The position numbers and the translations under genes were made by a program. The notes under the pieces are model-generated. The model saw nothing but the letters and a program-made list of their open reading frames with translations, was not told where the DNA came from and searched no databases. DNA of 63,043 nucleotides, counting the filler, from Hyphochytrium catenoides (taxonomy: Eukaryota; Protista; Hyphochytriomycota), in assembly GCA_900088475.1 (NCBI GenBank). It is 17 parts of 17 records of this genome, joined end to end, with 100 filler letters (N's around TTAATTAATTAA, not from the genome) between each part and the next. Parts side by side here need not be neighbours in the genome. Positions count along the whole stretch, not along the records: positions 50,755 to 53,030 come from FLMG01001974.1; 16 more parts are not named here. The stretch is one strand, 5' to 3'. Positions 50,607 through 53,030 of the stretch are shown in pieces. Positions within the stretch are counted from its first letter, which is position 1, and every line of letters starts with the position of its first letter.

Positions 50607-51110
50607 GTATCTTTCTCTAGACGGTGGCCTGTCTCGCTTCTGTCTCTTACTCTANNNNNNNNNNNNNNNNNNNNNNNNNNNNNNNNNNNNNNNNNNNNTT
50701 AATTAATTAANNNNNNNNNNNNNNNNNNNNNNNNNNNNNNNNNNNNNNNNNNNNTTGTATTTGTGTACACAAATACAAATAAAACTTGTCCAACCTGTGG
50801 ACATTTTACATCATAACCCTTGATTGATGGGGGCTTATTACCGTCATAGATATAACCCTTGCCAGGTTTGCCCATACATTAAGTTGGCGATGCTGCTCGG
50901 CGGCCAGATGTGTCAATGAATCTATGGCTAAAAAGTCTGACAGGTGCACTGAGTGGTCGTCCACCTTAAGCCAGTCTTTTGTATAGGGATAGTGTCCCAG
51001 GTCAATTGACTGGACTAACGCTTAAACCCTGTAACCCCACCCAAATTTCGGCGACCACATTTTTGGGAGGGTAGTGTAGCCCTTAATACAGTATAAGCCT
51101 AACATCGGTC

Positions 51111-51222
51111 GATTGGAAAAGCGGCCACTACTGTTATGCGGACGGCCTCCTACAGTAGGTCTGATTGGGAAAACATGATCAGAAGTCCATCGCCCCGCCC
51201 CGCCGACCTCATGAAACTATAA
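51111..51222 (+). promoter_or_regulatory. Putative Pol II promoter: two ATTGG (CCAAT) boxes, GC box CCCCGCCCCGCC, TATAAT
   Basis: GATTGG at ~51111 and ~51163, GC box 51193-51204, TATAA 51218-51222, ordered just upstream of the long inverted repeat. Confidence 0.35.
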
Positions 51223-51282
51223 TCGCCCAGTGTTAGCAGCGCTCCATGTTATGGGTTAGCTTTGCGAGATGCAGCTCTCAGA

Positions 51283-51925
51283 TGTTGAAATCTGAGGGCT
51301 CAGCTATGTGGACTACAAGCTGGCTTAACTACTCAAATCCCAGCTCCAAAAAACTTTCAATAGAAGCCGAGATATTAAGCAATCGAGATGTCCCTGCTTA
51401 TATCTATGGCTTATGGTCAGTATCCGCGAATACCTTCAAGACTGACTGTTCTGGACAAGAATACCTCTATGACTGGATATCTTAGGGTTTAGTAGGAATA
51501 GTTGGCATAGTCAGAATAGCTCTAGATTGTGGGATCCCAATTGGGCTTACAAGTAGAGCACTCTCGACTAAGGACATTGTTCATGTTGGATTTGTATGGG
51601 TTGTTGGATTTGTATGGGTTGATTGGACAATGTCACTAGATGAGAGTGCTCTACTTATAAGCCCAACTGGGGTCCCATAATCTAGAGCTATTCTGACTAT
51701 GCCAACTATTCCTAATAAACCCGAAGATATTCAGTCATAGAGAAATCCCTGTCTAGAACAGTCAGTCCTGAAGGTATTCCGGGGTACTGACCATAAGCCA
51801 TAGATATAAACAGGGGCATTTCGTTTGCTTCATATCTCGGCTTCTACTGGGAGTTTAGAGCTGAAACTTTGGTAGTTAAGCTTGCCAGCTTGTAGTCCAC
51901 ATAGCTGTGCCCTCAGACTCCAACA
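51283..51925. repeat. Long imperfect inverted repeat: arms 51283-51583 and 51624-51925, 40-nt loop containing an 18-nt tandem duplication
   Basis: Arms align as reverse complements over ~300 nt (roughly 85% identity by eye) with perfect blocks of 24, 25 and 36 nt. Confidence 0.97.
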
Positions 51926-52423
51926 GTTCAATCATCTCATACAAATCCAACATCACAAAGGCAGGGCTGCTGAGAAGCTTTACCAAGTGCCATACCGGAA
52001 GCTCTAGATTCATATGGAACTGTGACGGTCGTCTGTGAAAACACAACCGAGTGGCTCATTATTGTCTGACATGTTTGGTCGCAACGTACACCATGTTACT
52101 CTAAAAGAGTTGGTGATGAGTACTTTACAGTGGAAGGTATTAAGGGCGAAGGGCTAAAATTCATTTCTAGGGAAAAGTCTCGAAAATGCAGTGATCTCAC
52201 TCATCCTCCAGAAGTGAAAAAGCTAGGCGCTTGCGGCTATATGAGCGTGTCTCAGCCCACCTCCTGGACCAGAACACCTCAAAAAACGCGGGAAAAAGTC
52301 ATGGAAATGAGTAGAGAGGAAAAAAAGTCGTGCCGGCTGTCAGAGCTCGACTCAAAGATACTGCTTGCAAGCTATCTGTCATTCTCCAGAAGCAGTAGGG
52401 TCTTATTTGTCTACTCTTATCAG

Positions 52424-53030
52424 GGGAAAGAAGAGAAGAGAACGACAAAGCTGGTAAAGAAGAAGAAGACTGCCCCTACTAAACCGATTCGGCCAGCAGT
52501 CTTGGCGAAGCAGAAGGCCAACTTGGATCACATGATTGCAAAGACGAAGGAGTGCTTTAGCGCAGTTGAGGCGAGGCCGCATTGGCTAAAAGAGCCTATT
52601 GTTGACTTCCTATCAGCTTTTCTACTGCGGAGTGAACTATCAACTGAAGCCCAGATAGCACACTTTAAATCACGAACTGATGTTCTTCTGCAGCAGCAAG
52701 GTCTCCCCACCTTCCAGAAGAAGGACAAGGACAGAGTAAAGCAACCATCCTCCCTGACACCCGCTGGTAGTCATAGCGCATCGGCCTGCCTGGGTACTAT
52801 GAGGGAGGCTCCTTTGCCCGCAGCAACAGACGTCATGACACCCAAAGGGAAAGAAAACAGTTCAATGTTGCACCATAAGACACCGCCATTGACCAAGAAA
52901 AAGGCAACCGTTAAGGCAAAGAGACCAGCCGTTCTAAAGAGAGAAGTCGCCTTGCTGACGCCAGTCTCGCAGTGCGATGAGAAGGGATTAGCCAGTGAAT
53001 CGAAGCGCACAACAGAATGCAAAGAAAAGA
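52424..53030 (+). CDS. Hypothetical Lys-rich protein exon, 3'-truncated
   Basis: Part of a >300-codon open frame; plausible acceptor (pyrimidine tract + CAG) at ~52423. Confidence 0.4.

Follow-up and report, generated by a model that had tools for sequence, protein, structure and literature searches.

Is a long fold-back in the genome of the protist Hyphochytrium catenoides a gene for small RNAs, or is it an ordinary inverted repeat left behind by transposon-like units or by a duplication? Long inverted repeats are the raw material of new small-RNA genes, and if this one is transcribed it would provide a data point, from a poorly sampled eukaryote, on the origin of hpRNA and miRNA loci. The fold-back is also a member of a very common class: long inverted repeats are found in thousands per eukaryotic genome, and most of them come from neighbouring repeat copies (PMC8728187). 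The locus lies in a window of 63,043 nt that consists of 17 parts of the genome assembly joined end to end, and all work was limited to positions 50755-53030 of that window, a 2276-nt piece of one contig. A first-pass annotation had proposed a candidate hairpin-RNA or polycistronic miRNA locus at this site. The features that are referred to below are as follows, with positions counted along the whole window.

51235-51282, + strand: weak outward extension on the left, which pairs with 51926-51971; it resembles the terminal motif and is not significant when taken alone
51283-51583, + strand: left arm (X), 301 nt, non-coding, with 88% identity to the reverse complement of the right arm
51584-51623, + strand: loop, consisting of two perfect tandem copies of the 18-nt sequence TGTTGGATTTGTATGGGT (51584-51601 and 51602-51619), then TGAT
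51597-51628, + strand: inner repeat T2, 32 nt, made up of the end of motif copy 1, motif copy 2 and the tail TGATTGGAC; it borders the right arm on the loop side
51624-51925, - strand: right arm (X'), 302 nt, the reverse complement of the left arm
51926-51957, - strand: T3, an inverted copy of T2, directly outside the right arm
52070-53029, + strand: neighbouring open frame of 321 codons, cut at the right edge of the piece; it is part of the context and lies outside the repeat

A repeat search finds the main arms at 51351-51583 and 51624-51856 (233 nt, 88% complementary, with 40 nt between them), together with an outer segment at 51283-51324 and 51884-51925 (42 nt, 93% complementary). Aligned with gaps, 51283-51583 and the reverse complement of 51624-51925 match at 262 positions and differ by 24 transitions, 11 transversions and 4 indels (9 gap columns), which corresponds to an arm identity of 88.2%, a Kimura (K2P) distance of 0.13 and a transition to transversion ratio of 2.2. 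The repeat search and the gapped alignment thus both show the ~640-nt fold-back with diverged arms of ~300 nt that had been annotated, and the description of its mismatches as mostly transitions with a few indels is borne out by the counts. Self-alignment with BLAST extends the similarity weakly to 51235-51971, and the whole inverted repeat spans 643-737 nt. By self-BLAST, the 480 nt that flank the repeat on one side and the 1060 nt on the other are unrelated to each other. Divergence between the arms is uniform along their length and random-looking. The inverted repeat is real and it is old, and its mutational spectrum, with a transition to transversion ratio of 2.2 and few indels, is typical of natural decay.

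A short palindrome, CTCAGAT ... ATCTGAG, is also found locally at 51273-51300, where the left arm has its outer end (self-BLAST E = 0.11). Its counterpart is missing from the matching end of the right arm, and the match is probably due to chance.

The arm alignment bears on the possibility that the fold-back is an artefact, whether from amplification (an MDA chimera), from hairpin priming of cDNA, from a long read that folded back or from faulty assembly. A perfect 12+12 palindrome, TTGTATTTGTGT followed by ACACAAATACAA, was detected by self-BLAST in the opening 24 bases of the piece (50755-50778). It looks like an assembly or library fold-back, and because of it fold-back artefacts may exist in the data set. 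However, an artefact of this type would be expected to show identical arms or indel-type read errors, whereas the arms here differ by 35 substitutions and only 4 indels, surround a 40-nt asymmetric centre and are bordered by unrelated flanks. An artefactual origin of the repeat is thus very improbable, and the annotation, which had argued from the divergence of the arms against an amplification or assembly chimera, was right on this point. The contig runs exactly 12 nt beyond the centre of the palindrome, from which we infer de Bruijn assembly at k = 24 or 25; at such a palindrome the k-mer that should follow has been used before in reverse complement, and the contig stops. The palindrome hints at a spacer-less fold-back in the reads, which may be a true palindrome, a hairpin end, or a chimera produced by MDA or from a cDNA hairpin, and a k = 25 assembler such as Trinity hints that the piece could be a transcript.

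The loop is a tandem repeat with a period of 18, 2.4 copies and 96% matches, as determined with TRF. A third copy of the 18-nt motif is found in inverted orientation at 51935-51952, directly outside the right arm, so that the motif has three occurrences compared with 0 expected by chance. T2 and the reverse complement of T3 are identical at 27 of 32 positions (self-BLAST E = 3e-4), the tail of the terminal motif being 9 nt long. None of 2000 shuffles reached the score of T2 and T3. Thus the right arm is bracketed by 32-nt inverted repeats and forms with them a 361-nt unit (51597-51957). In this unit T2, right arm and T3 are arranged as in a short, MITE-like element that is bounded by terminal inverted repeats. 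The left arm is a second, inverted copy of the interior of the 361-nt unit. On the loop side this left copy matches the unit only through GTTCA (51579-51583), and the loop motif starts immediately thereafter.

The left outer flank T1 (51240-51282) was also compared with the terminal motif, with P = 0.43 against T2 and P = 0.10 against the reverse complement of T3. T1 was dropped as unproven in its role as a left-flank copy of the terminal motif (P 0.1-0.43), which leaves a single complete unit of the supposed two. The similarity of T3 to the loop (84%) is far above its similarity to the left outer flank. There is no direct repeat of at least 5 nt at any boundary compatible with the inverted repeat, which agrees with the annotated lack of a target-site duplication (TSD); duplications of 2-4 nt are beyond what this test can judge. 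No tandem sub-repeats were detected in the arms with TRF. The loop alone is tandem (18 nt x 2.4), with an additional weak 9-nt signal at 51490-51519. A reading of T2 and T3 as the borders of an invertible promoter (inverton) was set aside, since no recombinase is in view and the piece is likely to be eukaryotic, with 1.3 kb free of ORFs, CpG depletion and no prokaryotic or viral match.

The repeat differs from its flanks in base composition. Its GC content is 0.43 vs 0.47-0.49 in the flanks, and the ratio of observed to expected CpG is 0.31 vs 0.64-0.70. For the whole piece, 50755-53030, the CpG ratio is 0.57 and TpG is in excess (1.17). Among the 35 substitutions between the arms, a change from CpG to TpG/CpA is seen just once, and the CpG poverty is thus older than the duplication. 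This suggests that the source sequence of the arms was already CpG-depleted, and the CpG poverty would fit an older, possibly methylated repeat. The overall pattern suggests a cytosine-methylating eukaryotic host, with an older or heavier depletion inside the repeat.

Folding of both strands, which had been proposed as a check with the first-pass annotation, gives a long stem on each. The + strand RNA folds with -460.4 kcal/mol (shuffles -184 +/- 8; z -36.6) and the - strand RNA with -458.5 kcal/mol (z -41.9). Each strand forms one unbranched stem of ~300 bp that is nearly all paired and has no large internal loops, and the small difference in energy between the strands arises only because of extra G:U pairing in the GU-rich loop on the + strand. 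The extended, near-perfect dsRNA stem of an hpRNA is thus found in the folding, and transcription through the fold-back would yield long double-stranded RNA. The term polycistronic is not appropriate, since the fold is a single continuous unbranched stem and not several hairpins.

Sequence-level tests for selection on the fold-back RNA were all negative. Perfectly paired blocks are found at the annotated positions (36 nt at 51493, 25 nt at 51398, and 22-24 nt at 51301, where the length varies with the placement of an adjoining 4-nt indel), and to that extent the annotation stands. The accompanying claim, that mismatches are clustered between the blocks, is not confirmed. When 39 breaks were dropped randomly into about 301 columns, P for the three longest perfect blocks was 0.19, 0.28 and 0.08, and P for their sum was 0.12; because the block lengths fit a random placement of breaks, the mismatches are not demonstrably clustered. 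Had one transcribed strand kept its pairing, its transition mismatches should be skewed towards G:U. The two strands are balanced, with 11 G:U-compatible mismatches on the + strand and 13 on the - strand. The discrete short hairpins or standout conserved blocks of a miRNA locus are not seen in the fold, which consists of one stem with chance-like blocks.

Database comparisons gave a similar picture. No Rfam family was matched within 51235-51971, even at E <= 1, and a tRNA search of the piece revealed none. By self-BLAST, nothing within the 2276-nt piece is complementary to the arms except the arms themselves. The longest ORF in the fold-back has 79 aa and no Pfam or database match, in keeping with the annotated absence of a meaningful ORF; a homologue search with it, which could have revealed translated copies of the repeat or an ancestral coding sequence, was empty. 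More generally, the arm ORFs show no protein-coding homologue or Pfam family, i.e., no coding ancestry was seen. A Pfam match of a 56-aa arm ORF to a Cry1Ac domain was disregarded, its E of 0.17 being at chance level. As far as can be read from the sequence, nothing marks the fold-back as a small-RNA gene as opposed to an ordinary transposon-like or duplication-derived inverted repeat, and the sole positive support for an hpRNA or polycistronic miRNA locus is the fold itself. Because there is no distinguishing sequence signature, the value of the locus rests entirely on expression and small-RNA data.

The DNA collections that were scanned for relatives (metagenome, GTDB-genome, viral, phage and plasmid) do not contain the source contig itself. 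Metagenome, GTDB-genome and viral contigs contained 0 matches to a 23-mer from the 36-nt perfect block, and genome and viral contigs contained 0 matches to a degenerate 27-mer based on the T2/T3 terminus. A blastn search of phages and plasmids with the whole piece found nothing. Because the source contig is not among these collections, the empty DNA searches carry no information on copy number. The products of nine ORFs are absent from an exact-sequence index.

The fold-back is followed on the same strand by the long open frame, which starts 145 nt downstream of the repeat end. Its open stretch is 963 nt (321 codons), compared with 231 codons for the longest among 2000 shuffles. The frame has no ATG of its own before 52241, and between the repeat and this position lie five ATGs in other frames. 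The translated product is Lys/Ser-rich with a predicted helical middle part, and its single-sequence structure model has a pLDDT of 46, which is of low confidence. The product has no Pfam family. A word-indexed search of 5.8 billion proteins, within a limited length band, detected no homologue; phmmer against 1.84 billion representatives, with no length limit, gave 0 matches; there was no usable match in the ESM Atlas; and back-translated scans of metagenome and viral contigs revealed no relative. The frame would be either an orphan gene or one from an unsampled lineage, and the fold-back probably sits upstream, in the promoter, leader or intron of an orphan Lys-rich gene. A candidate splice acceptor, TTTACAG followed by TGG, is present at 52129/52130, as recognised by inspection only. 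The contig is not taken to be human, since an open frame of 321 codons would then be expected to have a match in a library in which the reference proteomes are included. On the other side of the fold-back, the upstream 490 nt (50755-51245) show no ORF >58 aa and no recognisable feature.

Several known systems are similar in part. Foldback (FB-type) transposons consist nearly entirely of long inverted arms with a short centre, the arms are built of tandem sub-repeats, and an 8-9-bp duplication is present. The locus described here likewise has long inverted arms and a short centre, with a short tandem motif at the centre and at one end, but its arms are not tandem sub-repeat arrays and there is no 8-9-bp duplication. 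The long-hairpin siRNA and miRNA precursors of plants and algae have a single long near-perfect stem and are defined by Dicer-dependent small RNAs and target homology. Drosophila hpRNA loci share with the fold-back a single long near-perfect stem of a few hundred bp with scattered mismatches (PMC10317233, PMC10292708). They are defined by Dicer-dependent small RNAs together with homology of the arms to a target gene (PMC10317233, PMC10292708), whereas the arms here show neither a target-like match in the piece nor coding ancestry.

Closer in size and setting are MITEs and the miRNA precursors derived from them (Made1/mir-548, PMC1784062; plant MITE-miRNAs, PMC9641971), which, like the fold-back, are <800 bp, non-coding, AT-richer than their flanks, gene-adjacent and hairpin-forming. 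Counted together with its 32-nt inverted termini, the right arm is 361 nt long and resembles a single MITE-sized unit, and the small size (under about 800 bp), non-coding content and terminal inverted repeats of MITEs are all found. However, the termini match none of the superfamilies tested, and the TSD of a MITE is not seen as a direct repeat of at least 5 nt at compatible boundaries. The hairpin of a typical MITE-derived pre-miRNA is also far shorter than the one found here. With respect to long inverted repeats in general, LIRBase holds 6.6 million with arms >400 nt from 424 eukaryotic genomes, and shorter arms were discarded as probable MITEs (PMC8728187). Many long inverted repeats are adjacent similar transposons on opposite strands (PMC8728187). 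Imperfectly complementary arms (at least 80% match) and a short loop are common to the LIRBase repeats and the fold-back, but the arms here, at about 300 nt, are below the 400-nt cut-off that was set against MITE-like repeats (PMC8728187).

Because of the base rate of long inverted repeats and the terminal-repeat anatomy, the reading that is favoured, and to which we give about an even chance, is that of a MITE- or foldback-like relic, namely a diverged head-to-head pair of short non-coding repeat units with terminal inverted repeats. The fold-back would have arisen long ago as an inverted duplication of non-coding DNA, about 300-360 nt in length, in which two copies of a unit with 32-nt terminal inverted repeats of its own were joined head to head, and both arms would descend from a repeat unit that was CpG-poor before the duplication. 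With an asymmetric centre of 40 nt and a divergence of 12%, the repeat would be stable as DNA. The unit that bears T2 and T3, the lower GC and CpG and the gene-adjacent position all support such a pair, and the foldback/MITE alternative, which the first-pass annotation had placed second, gains a little from the 32-nt inverted repeats and the low GC and CpG. The missing TSD of at least 5 nt weakens it, as do the incomplete left copy and arms without tandem sub-repeats, in which the locus is unlike classical foldback elements. The lack of a TSD would be expected if the repeat were instead a unique local inverted segmental duplication, produced for example by a replication template switch or fold-back repair, with no link to a mobile element and followed by neutral decay. 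The uniform, random-looking divergence of the arms and the short centre (40 nt), typical of template-switch products, are consistent with such an event, and no other copy was found in the searched collections, the source contig not being among them. However, a unique duplication leaves unexplained the inverted recurrence of the loop sequence outside the right arm (T2/T3), and T3 is closer to the loop (84%) than to the left outer flank, which would be its expected direct counterpart. We consider this origin unlikely, but worth keeping in mind.

A head-to-head pair of repeat units could still give rise to small RNAs. If the region is transcribed through, e.g., with the downstream gene, an RNA stem of about 300 bp would form, which Dicer would be able to process in a host competent for RNAi. 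For a relic pair of units this property would be a structural by-product, and the sequence is without sign of selection for it. A functional endogenous hpRNA or proto-miRNA locus would go further, in that one strand would be transcribed and the stem diced to 20-24-nt RNAs that silence a target in trans or the downstream gene in cis. The extremely stable, almost fully paired fold is consistent with such a function, as are the length and identity of the arms, which are within the range of known siRNA-producing inverted repeats (PMC8728187). Furthermore, MITE-derived hairpins are documented sources of miRNAs (PMC1784062, PMC9641971), and a transposon origin is thus compatible with an hpRNA locus; present neutrality and siRNA output of the fold-back would not be mutually exclusive. 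Read-through co-transcription is conceivable because the repeat ends 145 nt upstream of the same-strand open frame, and the contig-end palindrome, which fits a stop at k = 24/25, would be compatible with a transcript assembly. Against this are the wobble-compatible mismatches, which show no strand asymmetry (11 vs 13), the perfect blocks, which are no longer than chance, and the absence of a match to an Rfam miRNA or other RNA family. Moreover, no arm-complementary sequence is present elsewhere in the piece, the searches with the arm ORFs revealed no similarity to a protein-coding gene that might serve as a target, and the single unbranched stem conflicts with a polycistronic locus. A functional small-RNA locus is therefore doubtful, although it should be considered. 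More improbable still, as we see it, is that the piece is or represents a transcript from an unsampled protist lineage with the 640-nt hairpin in the leader of the orphan Lys-rich gene, diced to siRNAs or proto-miRNAs, i.e., a young hpRNA gene seen soon after its birth from a MITE-like dimer. Were this so, small-RNA production would be coupled to the orphan gene's own expression.
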